A stretch of 64,000 nt of DNA, from positions 206,757 to 270,756 of the IMG/VR virus record IMGVR_UViG_3300023049_000005; one strand, 5' to 3'. Made by a program: the position numbers and the translations under genes. Position 1 is the first letter of the stretch, and every line of letters starts with the position of its first letter. The notes under the pieces are model-generated. The model saw only the letters and a program-made list of their open reading frames with translations. It was not told the origin of the DNA and did not search any database. Shown here piece by piece: positions 1,536 through 60,184 of the stretch.

Positions 1536-2201
1536 ATGAAGTTAATATTAGAATTCACAGAATTTAATCACCAAAGAATGAATAGTGATTCTGTTCCACA
1601 ATCAACACATGTAGATGATCCACAATTATCTCTTGGTTCATTTAACAGATTTCAATCTAATCTTAAAAATGCAGTTAATAAATTAAACTCTATTTATAAG
1701 AAAATGAGTATTACTACATCAGGTGTTAATCTGACTAGTGGTAAACCTATTGAACAAAATGATATTAAGAACATCAAGATTCTTAGAATATTCCCTAGTG
1801 ATGATATTTACTATAATGTTTATTTCTCTTTCGAATTAGAAGAAAACGAATATTACGGAGTCATTAAAAAAATAAACCATGACCAACCTATATTATCATC
1901 TGAAATTTTTAAAGATGTGACAGTATTTGGATCTAAAGAATGGGTAATTAGAGTGAAGGGTAATTTGGTTAAGACTATAAAAAATTGGCTTAATGTAACT
2001 AAAGGAGAATATTTATCATTAAAAGAGATTGAGGTAATTGATAAATTAACAGGTGAGTTAATACTACTTCCTGAGAAAAGTAAAATAGAAGTTCTTGGTA
2101 CGTTTGACAGTGTGATTAATATTACACATGAAGATAGAGAATATGATCTTAAAAATGGTAATTATTATTACTTCAATTATTACTTCGAGAATTTAAACTA
2201 A
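1536..2201 (+). CDS. Hypothetical virion-associated protein (N-terminal tag MKLILEFTEFN)
   Basis: 221-aa ORF behind late-type promoter, with tag-like N-terminus. Confidence 0.6.
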   Translation: MKLILEFTEFNHQRMNSDSVPQSTHVDDPQLSLGSFNRFQSNLKNAVNKLNSIYKKMSITTSGVNLTSGKPIEQNDIKNIKILRIFPSDDIYYNVYFSFELEENEYYGVIKKINHDQPILSSEIFKDVTVFGSKEWVIRVKGNLVKTIKNWLNVTKGEYLSLKEIEVIDKLTGELILLPEKSKIEVLGTFDSVINITHEDREYDLKNGNYYYFNYYFENLN

Positions 2202-2399
2202 GGAATTTATAAGCTGATCTCTTTTTTCTATAAGAGTATGAAAGTGTTCTTTTTTGTAAACTTCGACTAAACCATTATCAGATACTATTAAGTACCCATT
2301 ATCCATATTAGATAATACATCATACTTCTTACCGATGGTCAAAAATGGATACTCATCATTAATACAGTATATAGGCTGTGTTCTTTCGTTCAAATACAT
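2193..2399 (-). CDS. Small hypothetical protein with C-terminal RDxxIxxL tag; paralog of 3823..4053
   Basis: LTIGKKYDVL..SDNG..Y..HF..EKRDQLINSLV aligns by eye with LTKLKEYDCL..DDYG..Y..RF..EIRDIKINQIL. Confidence 0.65.
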   Translation of the reverse strand: MYLNERTQPIYCINDEYPFLTIGKKYDVLSNMDNGYLIVSDNGLVEVYKKEHFHTLIEKRDQLINSLV

Positions 2400-2402
2400 C
2401 TA

Positions 2403-3308
2403 TTATATATTAAACTCAATTTCTCCATTATCTACTTTTTTCAAGAAATCAGAAACAAAATTGTTGTTAAAATAATCCCAAATATCTACATAATTATCAA
2501 CAGCGAATTCTCTAAAGTATCCCGAACATAGTGTTGTACATATCCGCATCATAGACCATCTTACTGCATCCTTAGGGCTGTAATATTTCTTACCATCAAA
2601 GATGGAAGGTAATACTAAACGTTCCAATGCTATAACATAGGATTCCTCTAAAATACATTTAGCCTTCTCTTCGAATGTAAACTTGTTCCATAGATCTTTT
2701 GAACACCAAACAGAATCTGTATCGGGTTGCATCTTTTCATATAAAGGATTATCATAATGAGCTACCATTCTATGGATATCATCATGTATAAAATAATACT
2801 TAACAAAGCCTTCACTTTGTCCAAAGAATTCTTCCTTAGATTTATTTAAACTAGGTGTCTTTAATTTACCTAATCTATCCTTTGTTTCTTCTTTGTTTAT
2901 CTTAGTGATCTTCTTTAATTTATCTATACCATTAAGTTCTTTATGTAAAAAACAATAGTCTTCTATATGCTTATTGAACTTAATAGGATAATAGATATGA
3001 GCCTTTTTAAGACTATATAAAATCTCTTTTGATCCAATTACTGTTTTACAGAAATGGTTGTCATATATATTATATAACAAAGTGAGAGCTTTCGAAGAAT
3101 CGGTTATTAAGAACTCAACCATACTTCTATCAAAATTATCATTCTTTTCGATATCGAAAAAAGTTATAAGATGACCCCTATCAACTATTTTAGAGGGGGT
3201 TAATATTTTTTTGAAATATTCTACTTCTTCTAAGTTAGCGATTAAGTCTATATCAAAATAACTTCTATCTCGATAATTAGAAAGTGCTTTAGATCCTACT
3301 AGTATCAT
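2403..3308 (-). CDS. Putative nucleotidyltransferase (Pol-beta superfamily-like)
   Basis: N-terminal hGS-x(10)-DxD signature (ILVGSKAL...FDIDL) and a downstream HDDIH motif. Confidence 0.55.
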   Translation of the reverse strand: MILVGSKALSNYRDRSYFDIDLIANLEEVEYFKKILTPSKIVDRGHLITFFDIEKNDNFDRSMVEFLITDSSKALTLLYNIYDNHFCKTVIGSKEILYSLKKAHIYYPIKFNKHIEDYCFLHKELNGIDKLKKITKINKEETKDRLGKLKTPSLNKSKEEFFGQSEGFVKYYFIHDDIHRMVAHYDNPLYEKMQPDTDSVWCSKDLWNKFTFEEKAKCILEESYVIALERLVLPSIFDGKKYYSPKDAVRWSMMRICTTLCSGYFREFAVDNYVDIWDYFNNNFVSDFLKKVDNGEIEFNI

Positions 3309-3320
3309 GGTTATAAAATA

Positions 3321-3491
3321 TTACTCATCCAAAAGAGCTTCTAATTCACGGATTATATGTTTATTAACAAGAACTTCTTCACTCCTTGTCATTTCAGCAT
3401 TTTTTGGTTGTAACCAAACTCTTTCTTCGTCAGTAGTGTGTGCTTGTCTCTTATATAATCCTTGTAATCTTCCTTTTATTTTATCTTCCAT
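3321..3491 (-). CDS. Small hypothetical protein (56 aa, not in ORF track)
   Basis: MEDKIKGRLQGLYKRQ...IIRELEALLDE*; co-oriented with flanking minus-strand genes and has an A-rich leader. Confidence 0.55.
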   Translation of the reverse strand: MEDKIKGRLQGLYKRQAHTTDEERVWLQPKNAEMTRSEEVLVNKHIIRELEALLDE

Positions 3492-3563
3492 ATTTGTTTA
3501 ATTATTATTTAATTTATCTTTTCAAGTTTACTTCTGTTTCAAAAACGGTTCTTACGCAAACCG

Positions 3564-3833
3564 TTAATAGGAAGAAGAAGTGTCTTCGTCATATGAAGAA
3601 TCTTCATAGTATTCATCAGTATAGCTAATCATCCCATCTTCGTTATATTCTTCTACAGTACCCGTAAGAATTTTTTCAGGATCTAAATCAATTATATCAA
3701 TTTTTTCACTTAATTCTTTTATATGTGTTGAAGCCCTTTCCTTACTGATTGGATCATCTTCTCTTATATAGCTTTCTACTATATCGTTTAGCTCTTCCCA
3801 AGCCTCGTTTATGTTTTCTATCTTATTGCTCAT
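3564..3833 (-). CDS. Acidic hypothetical protein
   Basis: 89-aa ORF overlapping the stop of the upstream gene; S/Y/E/D-rich tail. Confidence 0.6.
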   Translation of the reverse strand: MSNKIENINEAWEELNDIVESYIREDDPISKERASTHIKELSEKIDIIDLDPEKILTGTVEEYNEDGMISYTDEYYEDSSYDEDTSSSY

Positions 3834-4053
3834 CTTCTAAAATTTGATTGATTTTAATATCTCTTATTTCTGCTTTGTTTATGAACCTATTCACATTATA
3901 ATAATGTGGTTCACCATAATCATCTTCTACTTTAATTGTATTAGTAGATTCACCTACGTCTAGACAATCGTATTCCTTTAACTTAGTTAAGTATACGTTT
4001 GCCCATATCACACAAATAACTTTACTTCCTTTCTCTATTTTACTTCCTAGCAT
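3823..4053 (-). CDS. Small hypothetical protein with C-terminal RDxKIxxIL tag
   Basis: Ends KAEIRDIKINQILEDEQ. Confidence 0.7.
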   Translation of the reverse strand: MLGSKIEKGSKVICVIWANVYLTKLKEYDCLDVGESTNTIKVEDDYGEPHYYNVNRFINKAEIRDIKINQILEDEQ

Positions 4054-4069
4054 ATTTAATATATATTAC

Positions 4070-4450: not shown

Positions 4451-4460
4451 TATATAGACT

Positions 4461-7304: not shown

Positions 7305-8412
7305 ATCCCATTCGGTTATTATTTTCTTCTTCCTCCAATTTATCATTATAGATTTGCGCTAAAGTCATATCTTCGGTAGTTTCTTCTTTCCCAAGTTTAT
7401 TTAATATTTTATTAGCTTTATCCGTTTTAAGTTTACCGAATTCGTATTTCTTTAATAGTCTTCCTTCTCGAAGGAGAGCTTTATCTAAGTTATGTACATC
7501 AGTGTTAAAAGTACATATTATTTGAAATCTTAAACAATCCCCTAATATACCATCAGATAAATTAAGTAGATCACTCACTGCAGCACCATTTCCTGAATTT
7601 CTCGATTCTACTAATTTCTCCGCATCCTCAATCATTAATACTGAGTTGGGATAGTCCATTAAGAAGTTTAACATAGAAGGCTCTGATAAAGAAGTCCCAA
7701 TATTAGGTGGTATGAATATAACACGTTTATTAACTGTTCTGATAAGGTGTCTTAAATAAGTAGTTTTTCCTGTGCCTGGATCACCGTGGAATAAGAAAAG
7801 ACCTACGCTTTCTCCTTTGATTTTTTCTATTACGTCATTATGCACATCGATAAAACCATCGTTGTAATTACTCTCTAAATCTAAATTTGCATATTTATCA
7901 TCGATCCTAAAATCAGATAAACTCATATCCTTACCTTGTGTAAGCATATGGACAGAAGTGTTAATTCTGTTTTTAGATCCGTCATTTATTATATTTTTAA
8001 GTTTATCTAAAACAATATGGTCTATTTCACCTTTACTAAGGAACTGCAGATTTTCGTAATTAGATATACTCAACACAATATTTCTTTTCTGATCAACAGA
8101 TATTCTATTTATTCTATCCTCTCTTTCGTTTACCAATTCCCCTGTATAATCATCTATTGTGTTCTCAGGAGTAAATGATTCCGAACAGTAATTTACATCA
8201 AATTCAAATTCTTTCTCTATTAGTTCTCTTACTTCCTTTCGAACCGATTTATGTATAGAATAGAAATTATAACTATAATTAGCTAGATCCTTGAAAAATT
8301 TTAAATAAATTAAACGAACCTCAGATGAATCTTGGTATTCTGAAATTTCTACATCAGTAATATTACCTATGGTTATATCGTTTCCTTTTATTTTGCTTGT
8401 CTTCATTTCCAT
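7285..8412 (-). CDS. AAA+ ATPase
   Basis: Walker A GDPGTGKT, Walker B LMIEDAE, SRH DKALLREGRL. Confidence 0.9.
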   Translation of the reverse strand: MEMKTSKIKGNDITIGNITDVEISEYQDSSEVRLIYLKFFKDLANYSYNFYSIHKSVRKEVRELIEKEFEFDVNYCSESFTPENTIDDYTGELVNEREDRINRISVDQKRNIVLSISNYENLQFLSKGEIDHIVLDKLKNIINDGSKNRINTSVHMLTQGKDMSLSDFRIDDKYANLDLESNYNDGFIDVHNDVIEKIKGESVGLFLFHGDPGTGKTTYLRHLIRTVNKRVIFIPPNIGTSLSEPSMLNFLMDYPNSVLMIEDAEKLVESRNSGNGAAVSDLLNLSDGILGDCLRFQIICTFNTDVHNLDKALLREGRLLKKYEFGKLKTDKANKILNKLGKEETTEDMTLAQIYNDKLEEEENNNRMGFMNRKN

Positions 8413-9711: not shown

Positions 9712-11517
9712 TTAACCCATAGGTTTATTAAATTCTTGTACTTTTTTAATTATATCACGATCTTGTTCACTACCTTCACCTGTTAAATATGCTTCTAAGC
9801 TTGTATCAATTGTATATTTTTCTTCTGTGTATACTTCTCTTGGTAGCATTGTATAATAAATAGAATCGCCTTCTTTTCTACTTAACATTAACATCGTTAG
9901 ATCTAAGTTAACAGGATTTAAATGATCTTCTATCATAATCATAGGAGTGTCTTGTTTAGGCATTAAGTATTCTTCCCCATCAACTTCTTTCTTATTCGCT
10001 AAGAAGAAAAAATAGAAATTATCTGATTCCTTTTTAAGTCTACTACTATCTTTTATTAATTGAGATAATAATAAAGATATAGTAATAGTATCCTCACTAT
10101 TTGCGGCTTCTATTAATCTATCCCACCTTTTCTTATCATCAATATACATTTGTCTTAATTTTTCTTTATCCGCTCTTGATGTTGCTATCTTAGTATGAGA
10201 AACTAAAATAGTAGGATCTAAATCAATTAGTTTATAAAGTTCTTCATCAGTCAATTCTACACCATCATATAAACTGTGTTTATTAGTGATCATTTCTAAT
10301 TTTTGAGTAGAAGTAAGTTTAAGTGTTGCTTCTTTATAATATTCCTCTATATTACTTTCTAGTAAATCAGGATAGTTTATGATAGCATATATCTTTTGAT
10401 CCATGTTTAATGATTTAGCAACGGACTCGTGTTTACATACACGAACATCTGTCTTAATTAAATCAGTGATTTCTTCTGCCGTTAGGAAGTCTATATTATC
10501 ATATAGTCTAACTAATCTTGGGTATTTCATTAAGTACTTTTTCTTATCACCATCAGATAGATCGCTAAATAAATCTCCTGCGTATTCACTCATACTTTCA
10601 TTATCGGCTAAATACTTTATCTTTTGATAATCTTCTATTTCATTCCATTTTTTTAGATATTTGAAGTATCCTTCTTTTTCAAGATTACTAGCACTACTAT
10701 CATCCTTATAATGTGCTATATATTTACCATCTTCGTACAAAGTAATACCAACTTGTGATTGTACGCCCTCTTTTGTTAGATCCCAAATAAAGTATTGTAC
10801 CCCTGCCTTTCCACCACGAGTAAGATAACTACTCCAATAGTTATACATACTATCAGATATACACCATTGTTTAGACCCTAAGTTACATGAGCCTTCTTTT
10901 GAGAAAATCATAGCAATTAAATAATCATCTTCATCAAAGTATACTATTTGTGCATCTTGATCTTTTTTAATTTTCTCGAATATATCCTTTATATCTGCGA
11001 AACTTTTTAAGTGACCTGATAAGTAATTGAAAAAATCTTCAACAGGTCTATCCTGATACTTAGCAATCTTTTTTAAGAATACATTATTATAATCTTCGTA
11101 ATCATAATCTATAATAGCATCTCTGAATCTGTTAAAGTGTTTTTTATTGGATTTCAATTTTTGTCTAAGCGGATTTGGTATCTTTTTTAAATATTTATTT
11201 GTCTTTTCGATTAGATCTACTTCTGCTAATATATCAATAACATCTTCAAACTTCTCTGCTTCTGTTACATCTATATTAAACTGTTTGAACGTGTTTTTAT
11301 GATCAGTCATTTTCTTATATAAATCCTTTAATTCATCGTGATTTATCCCTTCTTCAGAGTGTATATCAAAGAAAAGAGGAATGTATTTTTGTTCCTTTCT
11401 CAAATAATCAAACGCTTTGAGTATTTCTTGGTAAGGTATTTCCCTACCTTCCTTATCTTTATATTCTCTTTTACTTTCGAAAATAAATTGTTCTAATGTT
11501 ATTATCCACTTTGCCAT
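9712..11517 (-). CDS. Tagged protein with conserved CxLGSxxWCI module (paralog 1 of 3)
   Basis: SCNLGSKQWCIS...QYFIWD...SQVGIT...AHYKDD; minus-strand TAATATATA at 11552-11560. Confidence 0.75.
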   Translation of the reverse strand: MAKWIITLEQFIFESKREYKDKEGREIPYQEILKAFDYLRKEQKYIPLFFDIHSEEGINHDELKDLYKKMTDHKNTFKQFNIDVTEAEKFEDVIDILAEVDLIEKTNKYLKKIPNPLRQKLKSNKKHFNRFRDAIIDYDYEDYNNVFLKKIAKYQDRPVEDFFNYLSGHLKSFADIKDIFEKIKKDQDAQIVYFDEDDYLIAMIFSKEGSCNLGSKQWCISDSMYNYWSSYLTRGGKAGVQYFIWDLTKEGVQSQVGITLYEDGKYIAHYKDDSSASNLEKEGYFKYLKKWNEIEDYQKIKYLADNESMSEYAGDLFSDLSDGDKKKYLMKYPRLVRLYDNIDFLTAEEITDLIKTDVRVCKHESVAKSLNMDQKIYAIINYPDLLESNIEEYYKEATLKLTSTQKLEMITNKHSLYDGVELTDEELYKLIDLDPTILVSHTKIATSRADKEKLRQMYIDDKKRWDRLIEAANSEDTITISLLLSQLIKDSSRLKKESDNFYFFFLANKKEVDGEEYLMPKQDTPMIMIEDHLNPVNLDLTMLMLSRKEGDSIYYTMLPREVYTEEKYTIDTSLEAYLTGEGSEQDRDIIKKVQEFNKPMG

Positions 11518-12045: not shown

Positions 12046-12324
12046 ATGAAAAAATTATTACTAATATTCTCAACTCTACTGTGTGTCAGTGCTTATTCAC
12101 AAGTAGATGGTAAATACGGATCGGAAGGACTTTCCTTTCACACTCCCCAAAAAGATACCTTGTTTTTACAGAAAGGTCATTTAATTACACCCGATATCAT
12201 TAGGATATGGGAAACCGATAGTACTATTGAAGAAACTAAGCCTGTTATCATTACCCATACTAACATCGCTTATATTAGAGAACAAAGATTAAAACAATAT
12301 GGAATTAGAAAAGAAATTCGATGA
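12046..12324 (+). CDS. Small protein with signal peptide; C-terminal IREQRLKQYGI
   Basis: MKKLLLIFSTLLCVSAYSQ Sec-type signal with Gln at +1, typical of Bacteroidota. Confidence 0.6.
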   Translation: MKKLLLIFSTLLCVSAYSQVDGKYGSEGLSFHTPQKDTLFLQKGHLITPDIIRIWETDSTIEETKPVIITHTNIAYIREQRLKQYGIRKEIR

Positions 12325-15672: not shown

Positions 15673-16095
15673 TTAATCCAAAAACATATCAATTTTCATG
15701 TCTCGATAATCGACTTTATGTTTGTCTAATGTGTTTACTATTCTATAGTGTGCGTCTTCACTATTTGTTACAGTGAAGATATAGTGAAGATATTCAACAA
15801 ACCCCATTTTCTTTTGTAACGGAAATATCTCACCACCACCTAAATTATAGACTATGTCAGTATTCTCACCATCCATCAGGACTTTTATGGATGTCGTATA
15901 ACTCGTTATAATATCGTATTTGAGATCTTTGTCAAAACTCGTCCATATAGGGAAGTCATATTTAGCGAGTTTATTATACTGTTTTATTGTCTTTCTTTTC
16001 TCTTTTTCTAAAAAAGATTCATACCAACCCAAATTCCCAATCTTCTTTTTTTGTTGGTGTTTATAAGCTATATGTGTGTCTGATCCTTTTTTCAT
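15673..16095 (-). CDS. Hypothetical protein with C-terminal RDxKIxxFL tag
   Basis: Ends VDYRDMKIDMFLD; directly behind TATATTTG. Confidence 0.65.
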   Translation of the reverse strand: MKKGSDTHIAYKHQQKKKIGNLGWYESFLEKEKRKTIKQYNKLAKYDFPIWTSFDKDLKYDIITSYTTSIKVLMDGENTDIVYNLGGGEIFPLQKKMGFVEYLHYIFTVTNSEDAHYRIVNTLDKHKVDYRDMKIDMFLD

Positions 16096-16573: not shown

Positions 16574-17155
16574 ATGGAAGATACTACTAATAATGAAGTT
16601 ATTGATATGGAGATTAGGTATATGCACGATGAATACCTATCTTCACGTGAAAAGCTTATAGAAAGAAGAAAAGAAGCAGTTCAAAAAGTTATTTCAAAAA
16701 AAGAATATACATATAGAATAGAGGGGATTAATTATTATTATATGTTAGAATCGGGTGTCACACTGATTGTTAGAGCAAATGATAGTGATATATCACATAG
16801 TCTCAATACGGATAGAATATTACTTAAAGAAGAGAAGAGAGATATGTTTATCTCCTCTCTTCTAGAAGATGTTGATTCATTCACCGATAGTTTGATGAAA
16901 GACCTAAAAGAAATTGAATGGATGTATAATGAATTTCGTATGCTTAAAAATAATCTATATGAGGCTATTATAACCGAATTAAGAGATTGGGTAGATAATA
17001 CCTTTGATATATCATACTTACTTCCATTGGTTATTTCTATCGGGGAAACAAAGTATATTATTACCGAAAACGAAGACCGTGGAGATGCTGCTTATAACCC
17101 TAGTGAAAATAAAACCAAAATTGATCTGAAACCATACATAGAGTATTCACTATGA
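16574..17155 (+). CDS. Hypothetical protein (internal EKRDMFISSLL); paralog of 17152..17676
   Basis: Shared C-terminal pattern PLVISIGETKYIITEN / PYVINLGSIKYLLTKE. Confidence 0.65.
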   Translation: MEDTTNNEVIDMEIRYMHDEYLSSREKLIERRKEAVQKVISKKEYTYRIEGINYYYMLESGVTLIVRANDSDISHSLNTDRILLKEEKRDMFISSLLEDVDSFTDSLMKDLKEIEWMYNEFRMLKNNLYEAIITELRDWVDNTFDISYLLPLVISIGETKYIITENEDRGDAAYNPSENKTKIDLKPYIEYSL

Positions 17156-17676
17156 TAGAATTAGCTGAGATTTTCGAAGAAAATAAAAAGAAAATAAAGG
17201 ATCTTAAAAAGTCCATAGTCGATATACTCCTATCTAATAAAGAGTTGTGTTATGAAGTGAGGTATGATCTATATACTATATTAGTAAAGGATAACCACTT
17301 AGAACACATAGAAATAATAGGGGAATCTTTATGCTCAAGATATAATACCTTTTATAATGCTTATTTAGACCATGTAGTTAGGGATATGAAATTAAGCCTA
17401 TTGACAGAAGAACATAAGGTAGAATTTGCTAATGAGGTAAATCAGATGCTAATAAATTTAGATCTATTGCTTATAGAAACACAAACTATTAATGAAGGGA
17501 TAATTAGTAAAATAGTTACCCATCTTAATAGTAAATATAATACTATTGAAACACCATATGTTATTAACTTAGGTAGTATTAAATACCTACTAACAAAAGA
17601 AGAAATACCTCTTAGTGTAGATTATGTAATTAACACTGATTACAATTTAATTGAACATAGAGAAGAAATTATCTAA
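17152..17676 (+). CDS. Hypothetical protein (internal VRDMKLSLL)
   Basis: Tandem paralog of the upstream gene; ATGA overlap. Confidence 0.65.
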   Translation: MIELAEIFEENKKKIKDLKKSIVDILLSNKELCYEVRYDLYTILVKDNHLEHIEIIGESLCSRYNTFYNAYLDHVVRDMKLSLLTEEHKVEFANEVNQMLINLDLLLIETQTINEGIISKIVTHLNSKYNTIETPYVINLGSIKYLLTKEEIPLSVDYVINTDYNLIEHREEII

Positions 17677-22732: not shown

Positions 22733-23038
22733 TTAATTCAATTTAGTTATTTCACCGTGGTTATCGTAAATGAATTTATACTTTTCTGCAATTGAATAAG
22801 AACAAGTATAATTAGTGTACACCTTATCTTCCTTTACTGCTTTTTGGATATCTTCTAAAGACGCTTGACCAAATTCATCAGAACTACCATAAAAAGTGAA
22901 TGTTTTATCTTCTAATTTAAACCAACCACCACCCTGTACTTTATCTTTCTCAGTAACTAATTCATTATGATAGATACATCTTGAAAGGATTAAATTTCCT
23001 TCTTCTATAATAAATTTGGGGTTTAATTCTTCTATCAT
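22733..23038 (-). CDS. Hypothetical protein
   Basis: 101 aa with YHNEL, GGGWF and YGSSDEFG motifs. Confidence 0.7.
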   Translation of the reverse strand: MIEELNPKFIIEEGNLILSRCIYHNELVTEKDKVQGGGWFKLEDKTFTFYGSSDEFGQASLEDIQKAVKEDKVYTNYTCSYSIAEKYKFIYDNHGEITKLN

Positions 23039-23313
23039 ACACCTAAATCTTCTATGAATTCATCACGACTCATCGCTTTTTTATAGGTATCGTATCCTGG
23101 AATTAAGGGAAAGTCTACATAGGTATAAACCTCTTTATACTTTGTTCCAAAGAAGTCATATATACGTATTCTACGCAAATCAACCTTTCCTTTTTTCATA
23201 GCAAAAAGAATTTTCAATACCTTATCATATGACTTCACATGATGTTTCTCTTGATGTTCTTTACCATCTTTGTCTTTGTAGATAAATACTGCGTCAAAAA
23301 ATTTAGTTTCCAT
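23035..23313 (-). CDS. Hypothetical protein with C-terminal RDxxIxxLG tag
   Basis: Ends AMSRDEFIEDLGV; minus-strand TATATTTG at 23333-23340. Confidence 0.65.
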   Translation of the reverse strand: METKFFDAVFIYKDKDGKEHQEKHHVKSYDKVLKILFAMKKGKVDLRRIRIYDFFGTKYKEVYTYVDFPLIPGYDTYKKAMSRDEFIEDLGV

Positions 23314-37614: not shown

Positions 37615-38001
37615 ATGATATTATTTAATGAAGAATACGACTTAGAAAAAAAGAAGTCATTAATAAAAGAACATAACCAAAGGTATTATAATGCAGTTTA
37701 TATAGACATACCTGATTATGTTATAAGTAAAATATTCTTTTTAACTAATACTATAAATATCAATAATAAGGGTGTAGATAACGTAACTATGTATTCTATA
37801 TCAGAATTAACAGAGGAATTTTTAAAAGATAAGATCATTTTTTTCAATAAATTAACACTTGAGCCATTTAATTATCATATAAATAATGATCCTGTTGTAT
37901 TACATGGTAATATTTATAATAGAAGTCAATATATGGATTTACCCATTTATCAAAAATATTTAGTAGAGAAGAGAGAACTTTATATTAAAGATTGTCTTTA
38001 A
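37615..38001 (+). CDS. Hypothetical protein with C-terminal EKRExxIxxxL tag
   Basis: Ends LVEKRELYIKDCL; AAAC-N17-TATAAT at 37584-37610. Confidence 0.6.
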   Translation: MILFNEEYDLEKKKSLIKEHNQRYYNAVYIDIPDYVISKIFFLTNTININNKGVDNVTMYSISELTEEFLKDKIIFFNKLTLEPFNYHINNDPVVLHGNIYNRSQYMDLPIYQKYLVEKRELYIKDCL

Positions 38002-40708: not shown

Positions 40709-40749
40709 TAATTTATATATAAATTAATGTTTAGTTTGTCTGATAAACA

Positions 40750-41532: not shown

Positions 41533-41533
41533 T

Positions 41534-41983: not shown

Positions 41984-41993
41984 ATTAATATAG

Positions 41994-42314
41994 TTAAATG
42001 CTATCAATAAGTTTATCTCTGAGTTCAGCTTTAATTAAGTTTACTATTTTTTCTTTATTTCTTCTATATAAGTAAACAGTAATAGTTTCTAATTTGAAAT
42101 CATTCAGATCTAATTTTTCTAAATCTAATATGATATAACGCAAAAATCCATCAGGTGATACTCTCCTTTCATGATAAGCATTACCCTTTAATAAAGATCT
42201 ATCTTGATATAATAATTTCTTCATTAGTTTTTCATTACCAATAGAATTACCTTCCTTGTCTTTTAATATACTAGGATTATTTAGTAAATCTCTTATTACT
42301 ATAAAGTCGCTCAT
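41994..42314 (-). CDS. Hypothetical protein with C-terminal ELRDxxIDxI tag
   Basis: Ends IKAELRDKLIDSI; paralog of 42311..42628. Confidence 0.7.
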   Translation of the reverse strand: MSDFIVIRDLLNNPSILKDKEGNSIGNEKLMKKLLYQDRSLLKGNAYHERRVSPDGFLRYIILDLEKLDLNDFKLETITVYLYRRNKEKIVNLIKAELRDKLIDSI

Positions 42315-42628
42315 AAGCTATCAATAAAAGAATCCCTCAATTCAATAGTAACCATCTTCTTTATTTCTTCATTGTCTATAAAGATATAATCAATTATATC
42401 AATATCAGACATCATAATAAATTTTTGATTTAAATCGATAACTAAGTATTTATTTATATAATATTCAATAATTTGACCATGTTTTATAACATCATCAATA
42501 CCGAAATGAGTTCCGCTATCATATTGAATTAATCTCTTTATAAAATCAATATTACCCCTATTCTCATTGTTTTTATACTTAACAATAGTTGGGTTATTAT
42601 ATATATCCTTAATCAGAATAAAATTCAT
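42311..42628 (-). CDS. Hypothetical protein with C-terminal ELRDxxIDxL tag
   Basis: Ends TIELRDSFIDSL; minus-strand TATCTTTG at 42633-42640. Confidence 0.7.
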   Translation of the reverse strand: MNFILIKDIYNNPTIVKYKNNENRGNIDFIKRLIQYDSGTHFGIDDVIKHGQIIEYYINKYLVIDLNQKFIMMSDIDIIDYIFIDNEEIKKMVTIELRDSFIDSL

Positions 42629-42646
42629 AATACAAAGATAAGAAAA

Positions 42647-43372: not shown

Positions 43373-43434
43373 AGAGTATATATTAAATCATATATTTGTC
43401 AAAAATAAATATAAATTTAAATTATTATATTATA

Positions 43435-45351: not shown

Positions 45352-45753
45352 ATGTATGTAATACTTACTATAAACCTTCAAGATGATACATTAGTATATT
45401 ACTTTGATAATACACAGGGTAGTATTCTTGTAAACGAAACTTATGTGAAGTCTTTCATAGGTGATATAGAATCTACAAAAGCTGTGATAGAATCTGCGGA
45501 TGCCGTAACTGATGACGGTTTATTAATAAGAACAACCCCTGCTATTATATTTACTGATGATTCTATATCTTGTATAGCTATCAATAAAGAAGGTACGAGA
45601 GCAACACACCTTATCGTAGAAATAAAAGAAGGATACGAAAACCGATTTGATTTAATTCATAAATATGTATCATTATCTGATGAAAGTCTTAAGAATATTG
45701 TATCTAAAATAAGAACTGAATTAAGGGATTGTTTAATAGATAAACTGATCTAA
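45352..45753 (+). CDS. Hypothetical protein with C-terminal ELRDxxIDxL tag
   Basis: Ends IRTELRDCLIDKLI. Confidence 0.7.
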   Translation: MYVILTINLQDDTLVYYFDNTQGSILVNETYVKSFIGDIESTKAVIESADAVTDDGLLIRTTPAIIFTDDSISCIAINKEGTRATHLIVEIKEGYENRFDLIHKYVSLSDESLKNIVSKIRTELRDCLIDKLI

Positions 45754-45754: not shown

Positions 45755-45828
45755 ATGTATATTTTATAACAAATAGAATTAAAGTAGAGTTAAGAGATAG
45801 AGCTTTAAATTCTGTTACCCCAAATTGA
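45755..45828 (+). pseudogene. Collapsed remnant of a C-terminally tagged gene
   Basis: ATG TAT ATT TTA TAA (MYIL*, like MYVIL at 45352) out of frame with ITNRIKVELRDRALNSV. Confidence 0.45.
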
Positions 45829-51466: not shown

Positions 51467-53084
51467 TTTTAAAGTATTTGAAGCAAGTTTAAATGATGAC
51501 ACTAAATTAGGGTCATGGTATTTAGATGACGTAAAAAGAAGAGGTGAGGAAGAATCACAAGAGAAAATGAGACAAGGATATAATCCTATGCAAATTCCTG
51601 ATCTTTTACCAAGGCTGATGCAAATCCAAGGTGCTGACTTTAACCCAAGAACAAGAGAACTTACTTGGATCAACGAAGAAAGAAAAGAAGAATTAGAACA
51701 ACTTACTGAAAGGATCATAAGAACAGAATTCGGTTCTGTTATTAATACTTTAGGTGTGGAACTAGACTTAAAATTAGTTGGCAATAAAGAAGAATTAGAA
51801 GACGCTGCTAAGGAAATGGAAAGCGAAGCTGAGGAACTACCTGAGGAAGAAGAGGAAGAAAAAGAAGATCAGGAAGAAAAAGAAGAAGAAGAAGAAGAGG
51901 AAGAAAAAGAAGAACCTAGTGAAAGACTTCTTAATGAAGTAGAGAAAAGAAAGTTGATCAACAACATTACACAAGGTTCAGCTAAAAACACACATAGATT
52001 GATCGCATTATATAAAAATGATATAGATGACATCGATCCACGTTTATATGATATTATGGAGCGTCTTATTAAGTCGCAAGAAACCATGGAATGGGACCCG
52101 AATAATCCGTTGAACAATATGTCTGATAGAGAAAAGGGAGATATTATTAAAAATAATATGAACGGATTTGCTGATATCGATTTTGGTGATGATGAAACAG
52201 ATGATGGTAGAGATTACGATGCCTCTGCAGGTGCTTTATCGGATATGAATGACGAAGAAGATGGTGGGGGTTCAGAAGGAGAAGAACAAACACAAGCTGA
52301 AGAATATGCAGCAAGAAACCCTAAGTTAATCGCTAGGGCTTTTGATATCGTAGTATTATTACACGAATCTGTTAAGGCTATATATGAAATGATCGCTACA
52401 TCAGGTATTGTAGAAGATGAAGAAATGGCAAGAGCCGTTATGAATTACACAGATACTGTATCAGATGAATTCGAAGATCTTAAATATGGTGTTTATATCA
52501 GACAAGATTTAATTGCATTCATATCACAAAATGATAAAATCGATGATATCGAAAATGGTTTTGAGTATGTTTGGATGAAGATGGTGGATATACCTGCGAA
52601 ACAATTTGTTAAACTATTCAAATACATCTTAATTGATACTTATCATGAAGATAGATTAGAAGTTGATGTATATCATTCTTATGACCAAGCTGACATCACT
52701 CTTACAGGAACACCAATGGAAATTATTGATGGTATTGTTAATCTTATTGAAGAAGAAAACAAAACATACCAAGAAGAACTAGCTCGTTGGGAAGAACAAA
52801 ACAGAGAAGCACAAGAATGGGAAAAGGATAAAGGTCGTTACGAAGAATGGAAGGATAAAGCAGAAGACGAAGGAGAACTCGAAGGTGATAAAGAAGACGA
52901 TGAAATTGAGAAATTAATTAAACAAAGTCAAGAAAGGAATCAAGAACCTGAAAAAGATTCTGATGATTTTTCTTCTATGTCTAAGAAAGAAGTACAAGCA
53001 GAGATCGATAGAATCTTCGATGAAGAGGATATCAGTAAACCTGAGGTAAGAAGTCGTTTAGATAAACTTACTAGCCTTGTATAA
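51447..53084 (+). CDS. Highly acidic tagged protein, possibly head core/scaffold-associated
   Basis: MAKRIDSFKVFEAS; poly-Glu tracts; conserved-looking KRKLINNITQG and VLLHESVKAIYE. Confidence 0.55.
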   Translation: MAKRIDSFKVFEASLNDDTKLGSWYLDDVKRRGEEESQEKMRQGYNPMQIPDLLPRLMQIQGADFNPRTRELTWINEERKEELEQLTERIIRTEFGSVINTLGVELDLKLVGNKEELEDAAKEMESEAEELPEEEEEEKEDQEEKEEEEEEEEKEEPSERLLNEVEKRKLINNITQGSAKNTHRLIALYKNDIDDIDPRLYDIMERLIKSQETMEWDPNNPLNNMSDREKGDIIKNNMNGFADIDFGDDETDDGRDYDASAGALSDMNDEEDGGGSEGEEQTQAEEYAARNPKLIARAFDIVVLLHESVKAIYEMIATSGIVEDEEMARAVMNYTDTVSDEFEDLKYGVYIRQDLIAFISQNDKIDDIENGFEYVWMKMVDIPAKQFVKLFKYILIDTYHEDRLEVDVYHSYDQADITLTGTPMEIIDGIVNLIEEENKTYQEELARWEEQNREAQEWEKDKGRYEEWKDKAEDEGELEGDKEDDEIEKLIKQSQERNQEPEKDSDDFSSMSKKEVQAEIDRIFDEEDISKPEVRSRLDKLTSLV

Positions 53085-53601
53085 GATTTTCAACAAGCTT
53101 GATTTTTTTATAATACCTCAAAAACACAAAGGAGGAATATGGATATTACTTATCCCATTCCTCTTTTTGATTATTGATAGTATTCTTAAATTAGCGTTTT
53201 CTATAAATATGGGTATCATTGGAACATTGGTGTACCTATTAGTCCTTTTTTATTGTAACTTAATATGGTATTATAGAACTAGTAAATGGTATCTTAGAAA
53301 AACAAAGAAGATATACTATCGTGTGGTGAGTCATCATATCTATTATTTACCAATACCAAAAAAATATTTTAAAAAGGATAGGGATGTTTTTTATATGAAT
53401 CCTAAAGAAGTTGTTTCTGATTTACAAAAATCATATGAAATGATATTAGACATAGATGACATAGAAGTTATTAAGTTATTATTAACTGATAATAATACTT
53501 GCTTTCTTCATCATCCTGATATTAAAATAGAATACGTATTAGAGCCTATTGTTAAAGTAAATAAAAGAAATGAAACCATTGATGATGTTTTGAATAACTA
53601 A
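53077..53601 (+). CDS. Membrane protein with C-terminal KRNxxIDxVL tag
   Basis: Two TM segments; ends NKRNETIDDVLNN. Confidence 0.6.
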   Translation: MYKIFNKLDFFIIPQKHKGGIWILLIPFLFLIIDSILKLAFSINMGIIGTLVYLLVLFYCNLIWYYRTSKWYLRKTKKIYYRVVSHHIYYLPIPKKYFKKDRDVFYMNPKEVVSDLQKSYEMILDIDDIEVIKLLLTDNNTCFLHHPDIKIEYVLEPIVKVNKRNETIDDVLNN

Positions 53602-56787: not shown

Positions 56788-57117
56788 ATGACTGAACAAG
56801 AGTTAAAATATTTAGAAGTAGGTATGAGCGTAAATTATACCGAACCATTAGATGAATCATATAGAGAAAAAGCAAAGAGTATGATCGAAGACACTGAATT
56901 TTTTGATGTTGTTTTTGATAATAGTGTTATTTGGAATTATGGTAAGGTAGATAAAATTGATTATGAGAATAACAAAGCTCTTATAAAAAGAAATACTTTT
57001 TCGGGAGACGCAGAAGAATGGAGATCTATATATGAATTAAAATTCAATGACGAGGATCAAGAAAGAATTAAAAAAATCATAAACAGAGAGACTACTATTA
57101 ATAATATATTAGACTAA
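56788..57117 (+). CDS. Hypothetical protein with C-terminal RExxIxxIL tag
   Basis: Ends IINRETTINNILD. Confidence 0.65.
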   Translation: MTEQELKYLEVGMSVNYTEPLDESYREKAKSMIEDTEFFDVVFDNSVIWNYGKVDKIDYENNKALIKRNTFSGDAEEWRSIYELKFNDEDQERIKKIINRETTINNILD

Positions 57118-57878: not shown

Positions 57879-57896
57879 AATATTTATATATAAGAT

Positions 57897-58286: not shown

Positions 58287-58298
58287 AACTCTTTTAAA

Positions 58299-58577
58299 AT
58301 GTCAAATACTAACCACTTCGTTTATATTCTAGAAGATGGTAAAGATATTGCTTACAATGAAATACATTATGTTTACGATGTAAATGATGATAATGACCAT
58401 TCTATAATGTCAGTTAAATTGGTATCTGAAATATATCAATCAGCAACAGCTTATATTTGTGAAATCCCTAGTAACTTAATGGGCGAGTTTAATATCGAAG
58501 ATGGAAATTATTTCATCGATGCTCTTGAGCAAAATTTACTTAATTATATACGTTCTAACGGAAAACCGATTTTTTAA
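58299..58577 (+). CDS. Hypothetical protein
   Basis: 92-aa ORF. Confidence 0.6.
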   Translation: MSNTNHFVYILEDGKDIAYNEIHYVYDVNDDNDHSIMSVKLVSEIYQSATAYICEIPSNLMGEFNIEDGNYFIDALEQNLLNYIRSNGKPIF

Positions 58578-58593
58578 TTTAATAATTTTTTAT

Positions 58594-58601
58594 TACCTTT
58601 G
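58594..58601 (+). promoter_or_regulatory. Bacteroidota-type -7 element TACCTTTG
   Basis: 18 nt upstream of the ATG at 58620. Confidence 0.65.
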
Positions 58602-58619
58602 TACTTTAAACACAACTAA

Positions 58620-59045
58620 ATGGAATTATTTATTATTTACATTATCTCTCATTTAATAGGAGATTTTATATTACAGCCCCGTTGGATGGGTGAAAATAAA
58701 TCGAAAGATTTAATGACATTAGTATCACACGTATCTATATACACGTCAACTATGATCATACTTCCCTCAGCAATAAACTTAACGTTATATAAATTAGGTT
58801 GGACAGAATTACTACTTGATTGGTCATCTTATTTGGTATTATTATCCTTATTCTTAGGACACTTTTTTACTGACATATGGACAAGTAAATTGAGTAGTTA
58901 TTTTAAATTGAGTAGTTATTTCTATTTAAAATATACTGAAACAAACGATAAGAAACATCTAAATTATTTTTGGTGGGTAATAGGAACGGATCAGACGATT
59001 CATTTCATTCACATATATTTAACATTTATTTATTTAGTATTATGA
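58620..59045 (+). CDS. DUF3307-family membrane protein
   Basis: SHLIGDFILQ, SHxxIY, HFFTD, IGTDQTIH; 18-bp tandem duplication (KLSSYF x2) at 58886-58921. Confidence 0.8.
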   Translation: MELFIIYIISHLIGDFILQPRWMGENKSKDLMTLVSHVSIYTSTMIILPSAINLTLYKLGWTELLLDWSSYLVLLSLFLGHFFTDIWTSKLSSYFKLSSYFYLKYTETNDKKHLNYFWWVIGTDQTIHFIHIYLTFIYLVL

Positions 59046-59341
59046 AGAACCCCAAAGTTGATTTAGACAGTAGGATCGTGTGTATTTATCTTAAAACATT
59101 AGGGATGTATTGTTTTGAGAAAATAAACAAAAAGGGAAAAATTGCTAAAACATATAGACCACCTTCTGTTTGTGGTGATAGTTTTTCAGAAGCTGTTGAT
59201 AAAGCAAACCAAGAAGAAGGTATTAAAATAAAGAAAACAAGATTTAAAACCATTGTAATAGATCAGACTAAGTATAAAAATTGGAACGATTACGTAACAG
59301 CAACATTTAAAAAAGCACAAGATGAAAATAGAATTAACTAA
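59042..59341 (+). CDS. Hypothetical protein
   Basis: ATG at 59042 overlaps the upstream stop (ATGA). Confidence 0.55.
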   Translation: MKNPKVDLDSRIVCIYLKTLGMYCFEKINKKGKIAKTYRPPSVCGDSFSEAVDKANQEEGIKIKKTRFKTIVIDQTKYKNWNDYVTATFKKAQDENRIN

Positions 59342-59966
59342 ATTTGGAGAAAGACATTTTAACAGAAGTTTTAATGGAACTAAAATTTTCTCACACAACA
59401 CGAAAGAGTTTGAAAGAGAAGTAAATGATCTAATGAATGCCCTCCCGCTTAACCAAGATGTTATGGACAGAGGTATTACTTTAGAGACAAATGGCGTTAA
59501 GCTTATTAAGGGGTACGCACCTTTTTGTAAGTTATTAGTAGTACCCAACTTCACAGATGCGAAGACAGGTACTATGCCTATTACAATGGAAAACTTCCAA
59601 TACCTTAGATCTGATTACTTTGCTAGAAGTGAGAATGAATTACCTGTTCTTTCTAGATGGTTAGAGATCCCAAGAAGGTTTGTACCTAAGGCTAATTTCT
59701 TAGTAATCATTTTATATAGCTACGATCAACTTTTAGAAGAACATCGTTCGAAACACGGTGATCAGCCATTTAAATTAGAAGATGATACTGATTGGGGAGT
59801 AGTGGCTATATTGGCTCAGATGACAGATGAAGAAGAGCCAATGAAGCCTATTACTATGATCCGTAATGCCATGGATAAAAAGTATGGTGGATCGGGTGTT
59901 GAAATCAATGAAGATTTGTATCAAAAGAGTGTAGATTTTTGGAAAAATAATGCAACTATAAAATAA
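59322..59966 (+). CDS. DUF3228-family protein
   Basis: GYAPFCK, ARSENELPVLSRW, ILYS, EEPMKPITMIRNA, GGSGV. Confidence 0.8.
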   Translation: MKIELTKFGERHFNRSFNGTKIFSHNTKEFEREVNDLMNALPLNQDVMDRGITLETNGVKLIKGYAPFCKLLVVPNFTDAKTGTMPITMENFQYLRSDYFARSENELPVLSRWLEIPRRFVPKANFLVIILYSYDQLLEEHRSKHGDQPFKLEDDTDWGVVAILAQMTDEEEPMKPITMIRNAMDKKYGGSGVEINEDLYQKSVDFWKNNATIK

Positions 59967-60184
59967 TGAAAGTAGAGATATTATCAAGTAGTGGTGTATT
60001 TCAATTACAGCGTGACATAAATGATGAATTAGAGAGAATATCACAAAAGGGGGATGTCGTATTAGATCTGAAATTTACTGATGTTGAAGACGATAGAGCG
60101 TCTAAGAAGATTTCTGTTATGATCATCTATTGTGATAAAGCAGAAATGAGAGATATAAAACTTAACAATATACTAGGTGAATAA
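59966..60184 (+). CDS. Small protein with C-terminal RDxKLxxIL tag
   Basis: Ends KAEMRDIKLNNILGE. Confidence 0.7.
   Translation: MKVEILSSSGVFQLQRDINDELERISQKGDVVLDLKFTDVEDDRASKKISVMIIYCDKAEMRDIKLNNILGE

Follow-up and report, generated by a model that had tools for sequence, protein, structure and literature searches.

C-terminal tags in the window

The window, a 64,000-nt stretch of IMG/VR virus record IMGVR_UViG_3300023049_000005 (positions 206,757 to 270,756 of that record), derives from an uncultured giant phage and was reduced to 81 greedy ORFs (20,260 aa); ORF calling was a crude longest-ORF heuristic. A first-pass annotation of the sequence had listed twelve ORFs with a shared C-terminal segment and two ORFs with internal copies, and all 14 of these peptides are present at those ORFs. 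Ten of the twelve C-termini carry K-x-E-h-R-[DEN]-x-[K/x]-[IL]-[DN]-x-[ILV]-[LIFG] followed by 0-7 polar residues (Table 1). To determine whether this recurrence could arise by chance, the regex R[DEN]..[IL]..[ILMFCV][ILVG] was scanned against all 81 ORFs. It hits 12 times, and 9 of the hits lie within the last 16 residues. In 1000 within-protein shuffles, the means are 2.4 total and 0.06 C-terminal hits, with a maximum of 2. The observation made in the first pass is therefore real.

Table 1 Positions of the tag and of related segments in the window. Scores are from the tag PSSM; coordinates are those of the window.
Position	Strand	Sequence	ORF	PSSM (bits)	Description
2196..2234	-	LIEKRDQLINSLV	2193-2399 (68 aa)		C-terminal tag; weak DUF6501-like body
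3826..3876	-	KAEIRDIKINQILEDEQ	3823-4053 (76 aa)	32	C-terminal tag
15676..15717	-	KVDYRDMKIDMFLD	15673-16095 (140 aa)	24	C-terminal tag
23038..23079	-	KAMSRDEFIEDLGV	23035-23313 (92 aa)	21.6	C-terminal tag, LG-type variant
41997..42032	-	KAELRDKLIDSI	41994-42314 (106 aa)		C-terminal tag; tandem paralog of 42311
42314..42349	-	TIELRDSFIDSL	42311-42628 (105 aa)		C-terminal tag; tandem paralog of 41994
45712..45750	+	RTELRDCLIDKLI	45352-45753 (133 aa)	25.7	C-terminal tag
53554..53598	+	KVNKRNETIDDVLNN	53077-53601 (174 aa)		C-terminal tag, predicted cytoplasmic; two predicted TM segments
57073..57114	+	KIINRETTINNILD	56788-57117 (109 aa)	20.5	C-terminal tag
60137..60181	+	KAEMRDIKLNNILGE	59966-60184 (72 aa)		C-terminal tag
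37960..37998	+	LVEKRELYIKDCL	37615-38001 (128 aa)	19.4	Ambiguous member
12274..12321	+	IREQRLKQYGIRKEIR	12046-12324 (92 aa)	below 6	Doubtful member; Sec-type signal peptide
16826..16870	+	KEEKRDMFISSLLED	16574-17155 (193 aa)	21.5	Internal copy, residues 85-99

The remaining two C-termini are less certain. In 37615, the ELYIKD portion of the terminal ELYIKDCL is encoded by one arm (37974-37991) of a perfect 18-nt inverted repeat (other arm 37995-38012) that is shared with the convergent gene 37985-38524, which ends with the mirror peptide ELYIKDNL. ORF 12046 resembles the R-E-x-K-L-x-x-L-G-I variant, with five residues after an LGI-like ending, but it would be the only exported member and is probably not a true one. 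Of the two internal copies, that in 16574 is strong, whereas that in 17152 falls below threshold. Similar internal copies in the related megaphage sit in proteins that look like fusions of a tagged unit to a further unit.

Comparison with relatives and other databases

To test whether the tag generalizes, a PSSM trained only on the 11 tags of the window was applied, at a threshold of 10 bits, to 443 ORFs of the related 634-642 kb megaphages LR745206/LR756502. This search returned 32 C-terminal and 14 internal hits, compared with 1 and 10, respectively, in 1,094 control ORFs. In the reverse direction, a PSSM trained only on 9 megaphage tags recovers 5 window tags at C-termini and 1 internal hit. 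In total, the tag marks about 12% of ORFs in these megaphages, occurs on many large AT-rich IMG/VR contigs and, apart from the single C-terminal control hit, is absent from about 1,100-1,400 ORFs of other phages. About one in eight proteins of this phage and its relatives, otherwise unrelated to one another, end in this short segment (R-D-x-K-I-D-x-I-L). Most IMG/VR loci were found through the tag itself, which biases frequencies there; the unbiased figures come from the window, loci L081/L082 and four arbitrary 50-kb slices of LR756502.1. The LGI/LGV variant is abundant in LR756502.1 and in a further locus, L137.

In IMG/VR, 81 of 119 exact matches to R-D-x-K-I-D-x-I-[LF] end within 16 residues of the stop codon. 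In contrast, 82 of 120 matches in GTDB genomes are deep inside proteins such as FeoB, MtnA, Fe-ADH, kinases and recombinases, and the few terminal matches lie in tiny non-coding frames. No description of the tag was found in full-text literature searches, one comparative jumbo-phage paper, Pfam, PHROGs or a PDB profile search.

The tag is conserved as protein on unrelated bodies

Selection acts on the protein rather than on the DNA. Synonymous codons vary freely and follow genome usage (Arg: AGA 7, AGG 2, CGA 1, CGT 1), the distance to the stop codon varies and the downstream DNA is unrelated. A nucleic-acid-level element (promoter, terminator or recombination site) that merely happens to be translated is thus very unlikely, although 37615 really is shaped by a DNA hairpin. 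The first-pass annotation had also placed several tagged genes behind host-type TAnnTTTG promoters, and a link to early genes of this kind is not supported. This motif occurs 63 and 44 times per strand against 50.5 in shuffles, and it precedes 4 of 11 tagged genes and a similar share of untagged genes.

The earlier statement that the bodies differ is confirmed. Within the window, only 41994 and 42311 are BLAST-detectable paralogs. More broadly, 178 tagged ORFs fall into 122 BLAST families and, after addition of the LR756502.1 sample, 200 distinct tag-trimmed bodies form 135 clusters after three profile rounds, 112 of which are singletons. Only 3 of 121 family representatives hit Pfam. Body sizes range from about 45 to 250 aa, and some bodies contain TM segments. 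Several bodies belong to independent families that lack the tag elsewhere. The Pfam DUF6501 match in 2193 ends at residue 55, before the tag. The phrog_4927 match in 3823 covers residues 4-64 and profile positions 3-72 of 73, and so runs only three residues into the KAEIRD... tag. A complete Tad2-like domain occupies residues 1-68 of an 89-residue protein, with the tag appended after an 11-residue linker. In two cases, the tag is lost on a conserved body. These results make it improbable that the tagged ORFs are one huge, fast-diverging tandem paralog family in which only the last helix, as an intrinsic folding or oligomerization element, is still recognizable. Tandem arrays of small tagged genes do exist (six in a row in locus L169, six in L182 and about 20 of 43 ORFs in L137) and, because many bodies are ORFans, hidden structural relatedness among some tandem-array members cannot be excluded. 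Nevertheless, the few bodies for which structures were predicted are given different folds by AF2.

Within orthologous families, the tag is the best conserved segment; pairwise identity is 0.77-0.97 for the tag and 0.33-0.53 for the body, a difference that is partly biased by how the families were found. In the syntenic close relative L322, the motif positions are kept while the variable positions change: the ortholog of 2193 retains R0, D1, h4, h7 and h8 (numbered from the conserved Arg). The tag of 3823 is identical in its 89%-identical ortholog (P0001/L322). For 59966, all 8 further homologs listed in a 1.84-billion-protein library, and two in L137, keep the tag, with R62 and L70 invariant.

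Predicted structure and location of the tag

To visualize the tag in a structural context, AF2 models of two bodies were examined. One body is alpha/beta and the other is all-alpha. In both models, which rest on shallow alignments (3 and 11 sequences), the tag is a terminal helix that protrudes from the body and whose pLDDT drops to 48-73, although it is the most conserved segment. In 59966, a beta-alpha-beta-beta body (pLDDT about 90) is followed by the tag in helix 58-70, in which the pLDDT falls to 65 and then 48. A low-pLDDT terminal helix would also fit an oligomerization element. No i/i+4 salt-bridge pattern inside the helix explains the conserved charges seen in the sequence logo.

Membrane-anchored carriers are predicted to place the tag in the cytoplasm, as they have K/R-rich segments after the TM; in 53077, the N-terminus is K/R-rich as well. 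The helix had been described in the first pass as amphipathic, but in the membrane-binding sense this is not supported: the mean hydrophobic moment is 0.21, the mean hydrophobicity is -0.25 and the net charge is <=0 in 73% of tags. In addition, strict conservation of R0 and D1 is not needed for lipid binding. A membrane-targeting helix of the MinD/FtsA type, which would likewise be C-terminal and helical, is therefore disfavored.

The tag does not co-occur with a second, N-terminal MKxIKxFExF tag, as the first-pass annotation had stated for the window. In the pooled set, 0 proteins have both tags, 66 have only the N-terminal tag, 203 have only the C-terminal tag and 1,530 have neither (Fisher p = 5e-4). 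This exclusivity fits alternative addresses, and it also fits complementary partners. Tags could bind each other, or the N-terminal tag, and so bundle many small proteins into hetero-oligomers or a condensate. The basic N-terminal half (K-4, R0, K3) and the acidic C-terminal half and tail (D5, D/E/N after +8) would suit antiparallel pairing, and natural proteins with two tags exist (locus L163). However, a helix of two and a half turns with a three-residue hydrophobic patch is too short for a stable coiled coil, D1 sits in the basic half and there is no direct evidence, which leaves self-association doubtful.

A proposed docking helix

The tag is best read as a portable short linear docking motif, a reading to which a probability of roughly 0.5 is assigned. 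It would be an 11-13-residue helix at the extreme C-terminus, with the consensus K(-4)-x-E-h-R0-D1-x-K3-[IL]4-[DN]5-x-[ILV]7-[LIFG]8 followed by 0-7 polar or acidic residues, that has been attached to, and kept on, well over a hundred unrelated small cytoplasmic proteins of one lineage of AT-rich T4-like jumbo and mega phages. The analysis itself establishes that the tag is selected at the protein level, biased to C-termini, specific to this lineage, independent of the body fold, more conserved than the bodies, modeled as a helix that sticks out rather than packing on the body, predicted to face the cytoplasm in membrane-anchored carriers and mutually exclusive with the N-terminal tag. That it binds anything is inferred, as are any effects on degradation or localization. 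In this view, the helix folds into a groove of one common receptor, with the small hydrophobic patch I4/I7/L8 as the anchor and the near-invariant R0, together with D1, K3 and D5, giving polar specificity. The receptor is more likely phage-encoded than host-encoded, as the tag tracks the phage lineage and C-terminal use was not seen in cellular genomes. The consequence is proposed to be recruitment of many accessory proteins, including at least one anti-defense sponge homolog, to one place or machine in the infected cell. The first-pass interpretation, a portable amphipathic docking, degron or localization helix that brings early accessory proteins to one partner, is thus supported only in part: the portable, helical and C-terminal character holds far beyond the window, whereas the amphipathic and early-promoter elements do not find support.

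A special case of docking, in which the receptor is an AAA+ unfoldase/ClpP-type protease of phage or host that removes or remodels the carriers on schedule, is possible but unlikely on present evidence. The related megaphages encode bona fide ClpP (PF00574, E = 1e-68), with two copies in the LR756502.1 sample, and in both megaphages the gene directly downstream of ClpP is tagged, although the two bodies are not homologous. This adjacency rests on two cases only (chance about 0.01-0.02). The window also encodes a classic-clade AAA ATPase (AFG2/BCS1/Rpt5-like) with a unique 200-aa N-domain, and the predicted cytoplasmic location of the tag would be compatible with such a receptor. However, the AAA domain is common in many tagless jumbo phages, and its N-domain is unique to the window lineage. 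In addition, the tag is followed by 0-9 variable residues and is therefore not a free-carboxylate ssrA-type signal, and conserved stoichiometric sponges such as Tad2 gain nothing obvious from being degraded.

A PIP-like tail that tethers many small proteins to a gp45/PCNA-like sliding clamp on DNA is less likely still. The lineage is T4-like (gp20 portal, gp23 capsid, family B polymerase), and the spacing h4-x-x-h7-h8 close to the C-terminus equals that of the PIP box and that of T4-like polymerase tails in the control loci, which end K-x-x-x-[IL]-E-D-F-F. The polymerase of the lineage itself ends R-L-S-V-[VL]-x-D-I-F, and a conserved 76-aa all-helical protein next to the polymerase ends R-D-K-K-I-D-D-I-F-D-D. 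Furthermore, the only two address labels known in T4 are an N-terminal capsid-targeting sequence and a C-terminal clamp tail, which parallels the two exclusive tags seen here. In contrast, the polymerase tails score -12 to +8 bits with the tag PSSM and lack the conserved D1, K3 and D5, so they do not look like ligands of the same site. R0, the most conserved tag residue, has no PIP counterpart, and aromatic residues at positions 7 and 8 are rare (F is 3% at +8). No clamp gene was seen in the sequence examined, and clamp binding by about 12% of all ORFs, including membrane proteins and a Tad2-like sponge, has no known precedent.

Comparison with known systems

The C-terminal clamp-interaction tails of T4-family proteins (gp43, gp33 and gp55) and PIP boxes are, like the tag, short motifs within a few residues of the C-terminus that are shared by otherwise unrelated proteins of a T4-like phage, with hydrophobic residues spaced h-x-x-h-h and often an acidic tail. 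They differ in that the tag has a near-invariant Arg, conserved D1, K3 and D5 and aliphatic rather than aromatic anchors, and it sits on about 12% of ORFs rather than on three or four replication and transcription proteins.

The N-terminal capsid targeting sequence (CTS) of T4 internal proteins and the encapsulin cargo-loading peptides, the latter also C-terminal, are portable terminal peptides that address unrelated proteins to one destination in a virus or virus-like system with an HK97-type shell. In this lineage, for which no virion proteome exists, a CTS-like role is better filled by the separate N-terminal MKxIKxFExF..[IL]xE tag. The sequence, the predicted helicity and the lack of a protease site also differ.

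Unfoldase and adaptor docking helices and degrons (ssrA with ClpX, the SspB XB tail with ClpX, the ESCRT-III MIM with Vps4 MIT, and Pup with Mpa) are, like the tag, short C-terminal segments conserved on diverse carriers, and they fold on binding to one AAA+ machine; the megaphages carry ClpP and AAA genes. The tag has no sequence resemblance to them, does not occupy the very last residues as ssrA-type signals do and has no identified receptor domain. Finally, the SSB C-terminal tip (D-D-D-I-P-F) follows a one-peptide, many-partners logic at a C-terminus in DNA metabolism. For the tag this logic is reversed, as many proteins carry the peptide and one partner is presumed, and the tag is predicted to be helical rather than an acidic and aromatic tip.

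The C-terminal tag recurs in related megaphages

The 270,756-bp viral contig IMGVR_UViG_3300023049_000005, of which the window forms the last 64 kb, has a GC content of about 30%. The window encodes the C-terminal half of a family B DNA polymerase, a baseplate wedge protein, a CCA-adding enzyme, dCMP deaminase, NUDIX, a classic-clade AAA ATPase, and a T9SS sorting domain, the last of which points to a Bacteroidota host. Three large window proteins of 809, 1345, and 601 aa share an N-terminal domain of about 200–290 aa (29–36% identity; E = 1e-26, 2e-22, and 2e-11) that has no PHROG hit. The polymerase gene covers only the C-terminal (polymerase) half of the enzyme, about 475 aa, so the enzyme is split in this lineage. 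By polymerase similarity (52–56% identity), the closest records in the annotated phage collection are the uncultured 634–642 kb megaphages LR745206.1 and LR756502.1, whose polymerase loci are here termed L081 and L082. A 241-kb sample of LR756502.1 contains a T4-type portal, a gp23-type capsid protein, two ClpP genes, and two AAA genes. No nucleotide-level relative was found among deposited phages.

To determine whether the C-terminal motif exceeds chance expectation, a deliberately simple regular expression, R[DEN]..[IL]..[ILMFCV][ILVG], was applied to 81 greedily called window ORFs. It hits 12 times, and nine of these hits fall within the last 16 residues, against 0.06 expected from 1000 within-protein shuffles. 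All of the peptides listed in the first-pass annotation are present, and its observation of a shared C-terminal segment therefore held. Ten members, designated by ORF start, are robust: 2193, 3823, 15673, 23035, 41994, 42311, 45352, 53077, 56788, and 59966. Two others are not. ORF 37615 is ambiguous, as its ELYIKD is encoded by one arm of a perfect 18-nt inverted repeat with a 3-nt loop that spans the overlapping 3' ends of two convergent genes. This repeat looks like a bidirectional terminator hairpin, and the second gene, 37985, ends in the mirror peptide, such that both proteins terminate in ELYIKD[CN]L. ORF 12046, the only member with a signal peptide, scores below 6 bits in the position-specific scoring matrix (PSSM) and is doubtful. 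Of the two internal copies, that in 16574 is strong, whereas that in 17152 is not. Strong internal copies, including that in 16574, sit in proteins of about twice the usual size, one of which (locus L163) has a second tag at its end. This arrangement is consistent with fusion of a tagged unit to a downstream unit.

The same tag appears at C-termini in 41-kb stretches around the polymerase of LR745206.1 and LR756502.1. In four arbitrary 50-kb slices of LR756502.1, 39 of 337 ORFs carry it, and adding the polymerase region gives about 12% of ORFs, which extrapolates to about 120 tagged proteins in this genome. The ...IL and ...LGI endings occur side by side in the same genome. An exact DNA pattern for R-D-x-K-I-D-x-I-[LF] finds 119 matches in IMG/VR, 81 of which end within 16 residues of a stop codon, on contigs of 4 to 476 kb that mostly measure tens to hundreds of kb. 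The neighbors of these seeds carry further tags: loci L169 and L182 each have six tagged genes in a row, and in locus L137 about 20 of 43 ORFs end in R-[DE]-x-K-L-N-x-L-G-I or close variants. Most IMG/VR loci were found through the tag itself, and all gene calls rest on a longest-ORF heuristic.

The tag is restricted to this lineage among the sequences examined

In 79 loci of other phages around their polymerase genes (1,425 ORFs before removal of duplicates, 1,094 distinct), no C-terminal hit is observed at 10 bits or more. PSSMs trained on the window only, or on the megaphages only, recover each other's tags and not the controls. Overall, about 1,100–1,400 ORFs of T4-like and other phages show 0–1 C-terminal hits, and the tag is therefore not a generic phage feature. 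AT-rich control loci (GC 26–31%) have no C-terminal hits, which rules out a compositional artifact of AT-rich coding. Two cultured Bacteroidota jumbo phages, MaF61 and PTm1, show no tag in 50 kb each. In the Flavobacterium phage MaF61 (locus L316), the polymerase and a 93-aa protein instead both end in [AE]-F-K-P-L-F-COOH, which is probably that phage's own clamp-binding tail, shared by two proteins. A related phage, IMGVR_UViG_3300024262_000020 (locus L003; polymerase 40% identical, GC 26%), has no R-D-x-K-I tag in the 21 kb examined. Six of its proteins, with no BLAST-detectable similarity, end exactly in K-Y-N-[LMI]-COOH, and several also start with an MKxLKxFE-like N-terminus by eye, although the strict N-tag expression flags only one. 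This ending may be a different C-terminal tag in a sister lineage.

The same DNA pattern in 185,579 species genomes from GTDB gives mostly deep internal matches, in FeoB, MtnA, iron alcohol dehydrogenases, kinases, and recombinases, and the few terminal matches lie in tiny frames. Mimicry of a cellular C-terminal motif of the host thus finds no support.

Coordinates of the features described in the text
Sequence	Coordinates	Feature
Window	ORFs starting at 1536, 4461, 5555, 6082, 9691(-), 20888(-), 21491(-), 38560, 39014, 43916, 49886, 50408, 51447, 57183, 57897, 60352	N-terminal tag
Window	16574-17155	Strong internal copy of the C-terminal tag
Window; L081; L082	17719-19152; 19989-21413; 20001-21425	Family B polymerase gene, C-terminal half
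Window	23359-25788, 45805-49842(-), 9712-11517(-)	Three large proteins with a shared N-terminal domain
Window	37974-38012	Inverted repeat over the 3' ends of 37615(+) and 37985(-)
L081 (LR745206.1); L082 (LR756502.1)	27760-29063; 29091-30257	ClpP gene followed directly by a tagged gene
L003 (IMGVR_UViG_3300024262_000020)	ORFs 11-460, 460-1011, 1011-1772, 2702-3343, 17141-17470, 17470-17967	Proteins ending in K-Y-N-[LMI]-COOH
L139	2866-3132(-)	Tad2-like protein with the C-terminal tag
L163; L084; L319	3656-4330; around 7337-7368; 16984-17580	Strong internal copies of the C-terminal tag
L316 (MaF61)	32154-32435 and 40409-43393	Polymerase and 93-aa protein with a shared ending

Selection acts on the peptide

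Arg, Asp, Ile, and Leu codons inside the tags follow genome-wide usage, and the DNA downstream is unrelated. Selection therefore acts on the peptide, and a DNA- or RNA-level element is rejected, with the exception of 37615, in which a hairpin shapes the peptide. Within orthologous families, the tag is 0.77–0.97 identical while the bodies are 0.33–0.53 identical, although part of this contrast is ascertainment, as the families were found through the tag. In a syntenic relative (65–94% protein identity), the 3823 tag is unchanged, and the 2193 tag changes only at the variable positions. A homology search with 3823 returned one close homolog only. All 8 further homologs of 59966 that phmmer lists in a library of 1.84 billion proteins keep the tag, as do two more in L137.

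The tag is appended to unrelated bodies

Homology over the whole length, which the first-pass annotation had named as grounds for rejecting its proposal, was examined at several levels. Among 11 window bodies, BLAST relates only the adjacent pair 41994/42311. Across all loci, 178 tagged ORFs form 122 BLAST families. After addition of the LR756502.1 sample, 200 distinct tag-trimmed bodies still form 135 clusters after three rounds of profile merging, and 112 of these are singletons. Only 3 of 121 family representatives hit Pfam. One of the three is a complete Tad2-like (anti-Thoeris sponge) domain, the only Pfam hit among them that points to a biological role, which occupies residues 1–68 of 89 with the tag after an 11-residue linker. 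For 2193, the DUF6501-like match stops before the tag, and for 3823, the phrog_4927 match stops three residues into it.

AF2 predicts a beta-alpha-beta-beta body for 59966 and a four-helix body for the 76-aa family that lies next to the polymerase in the megaphages. In both models, which rest on shallow alignments (one used without two sequences from the GenBank megaphages), the tag is a terminal helix whose confidence falls to 48–73 while the body is above 90. Foldseek searches with the two models gave no significant hit. Two homolog pairs show a conserved body with and without the tag. The simple-paralog reading is therefore rejected, although tandem duplication clearly contributes locally.

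Anatomy and topology of the tag

From 161 non-redundant tags, the consensus is K(-4) 41%, E(-2) 30%, I/L(-1) 41%, R0 99%, D1 67% (E/N 28%), K3 75%, I/L4 100%, D/N5 73%, I/L/V7 98%, and L8 68% (G 12%, I 10%). In most cases, the protein ends after one to five further residues, mostly D, N, E, or K. On a helix, K-4, R0, I4, I7, and L8 share one face. The conserved charges are not placed to form i/i+4 pairs with each other, which argues for intermolecular contacts. Sixteen of 201 tagged proteins have TM segments. Where there is one N-terminal TM, it is followed by a K/R-rich stretch, and the two-TM window protein 53077 is K/R-rich on both cytoplasmic sides. The tag is therefore predicted to be cytoplasmic.

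The C-terminal tag does not co-occur with an N-terminal tag

About 18 window proteins by eye, and 9 by a strict regular expression, start with M-K-x-I-K-x-F-[EDN]-x-F, often followed by [IL]-x-E. This N-terminal tag is also specific to the lineage, with 66 hits of the expression across the tag-bearing loci (1,799 ORFs) against 3 in 961 control ORFs. With that expression, no protein carries both tags (0 both, 66 N-only, 203 C-only, 1,530 neither; p = 5e-4). The N-tag resembles the T4 capsid targeting sequence together with the gp21 prohead-protease cleavage site, a resemblance that is a lead only. If it holds, the C-tag would be the address for a different destination.

Proposed role of the tag

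The evidence fits a short linear docking motif that folds onto one common receptor in the cytoplasm of the infected cell. The sequence analysis itself establishes that the tag is portable, restricted to C-termini, specific to the lineage, under purifying selection at the protein level, modeled as a protruding helix, and predicted to be exposed to the cytoplasm. That it binds a single receptor, and that this receptor is phage-encoded, is inferred, the latter from the tag tracking the phage lineage and from cellular genomes making no C-terminal use of it. Any effect on protein stability, clamp binding, or packaging into the shell would likewise be inference. The interpretation in the first-pass annotation is thus supported in part. 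Its proposed link between tagged genes and host-type promoters is not supported, as TAnnTTTG is neither enriched in the window nor associated with tagged genes.

Three candidate destinations are compatible with these data. The first is an unfoldase or protease station. The megaphages encode bona fide ClpP (PF00574, E about 1e-68), and in both, the gene directly downstream of ClpP is tagged although the two bodies are not homologous. The window also has an AFG2/BCS1/Rpt-like AAA ATPase with a unique N-domain. As a lineage-specific receptor, however, this ATPase is uninformative, since only its AAA domain has relatives and those are spread over many tagless jumbo phages. The second is the sliding clamp. 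The h-x-x-h-h spacing near the C-terminus matches the polymerase tails of T4-like phages, and the 76-aa protein next to the polymerase ends in I-D-D-I-F-D-D. In contrast, the lineage's own polymerase tail does not fit the tag profile and lacks the conserved polar residues, and no clamp gene was seen within the sequence examined. The third is tag–tag or N-tag/C-tag pairing.

A more far-reaching possibility, which remains tentative and is considered less likely than not (roughly one in three), is that a lineage of T4-like jumbo and mega phages of Bacteroidota sorts a large part of its proteome with two mutually exclusive terminal address labels, one an N-terminal CTS-like tag and the other the C-terminal R-D-x-K-I-D-x-I-L helix. 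In this view, the helix would define a phage-built hub in the infected cell, such as an organizing center, an unfoldase or protease station, or a DNA-tracking platform, into which more than 100 unrelated accessory proteins per genome, including anti-defense proteins, would plug. That would be a viral short-linear-motif network comparable in scale to eukaryotic ones.

Huge phages carry hundreds of ORFans for which nothing can be said, and a shared, strongly selected tag gives a single experimental handle on about 12% of them at once. Identification of the receptor would name the cellular destination of over a hundred proteins per genome. It would also show that phages, like eukaryotes and their viruses, organize protein networks with short linear motifs. 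The tag could also be used to recognize members of this uncultured lineage and could serve as a ready-made recruitment tag for engineering. Its exclusivity with an N-terminal CTS-like tag suggests a two-address sorting logic.

Comparison with known terminal signals

Pfam, PHROGs, and a PDB profile search give nothing that covers the tag, and full-text literature searches and papers on jumbo or huge phage genomics contain no description of it. Like a PIP box or T4-type clamp-binding tail, the tag has a hydrophobic core close to the C-terminus, with I/L at +4, I/L/V at +7, and L/I/F/G at +8, followed by 0–7 residues. It lacks the aromatic pair and conserved Gln of these motifs, as F is 1% at +7 and 3% at +8 and the conserved residues are instead R0, D1, K3, and D/N5. 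The polymerase tails of the window and of the polymerase loci L081, L082, L002, and L003 (R-L-S-V-x-x-D-I-F, conserved from the window to L003) score 0.3, -12.2, -9.0, -9.6, and 8.0 bits, respectively, against a threshold of 10. An ssrA-type or ClpX C-motif degron has non-polar residues at the very C-terminus with a free carboxylate, whereas the tag is followed by -1 to 9 residues, mostly D, N, E, or K. The high hydrophobic moment and net positive charge of a membrane-targeting amphipathic helix of the MinD/FtsA type are absent as well, with a mean hydrophobic moment of 0.21, a mean hydrophobicity of -0.25, and a net charge of ≤0 in 73% of tags. With respect to capsid-targeting and cargo-loading peptides (T4 CTS, encapsulin CLP), the carriers of such peptides are found inside the shell, and in T4 the peptide is adjacent to a prohead-protease site; here the [IL]-x-E site is seen after the N-tag, not at the C-tag. 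The Bacteroidota T9SS C-terminal sorting domain is a beta-sandwich of 70–100 aa on Sec-exported proteins, whereas the tag is about 13 aa, is predicted to be helical, and sits on proteins without signal peptides; a genuine Por_Secre_tail domain exists elsewhere in the window. Portable terminal address or docking peptides are known, while this motif, its scale of about 12% of ORFs, and its pairing with an exclusive N-terminal tag appear to be new.
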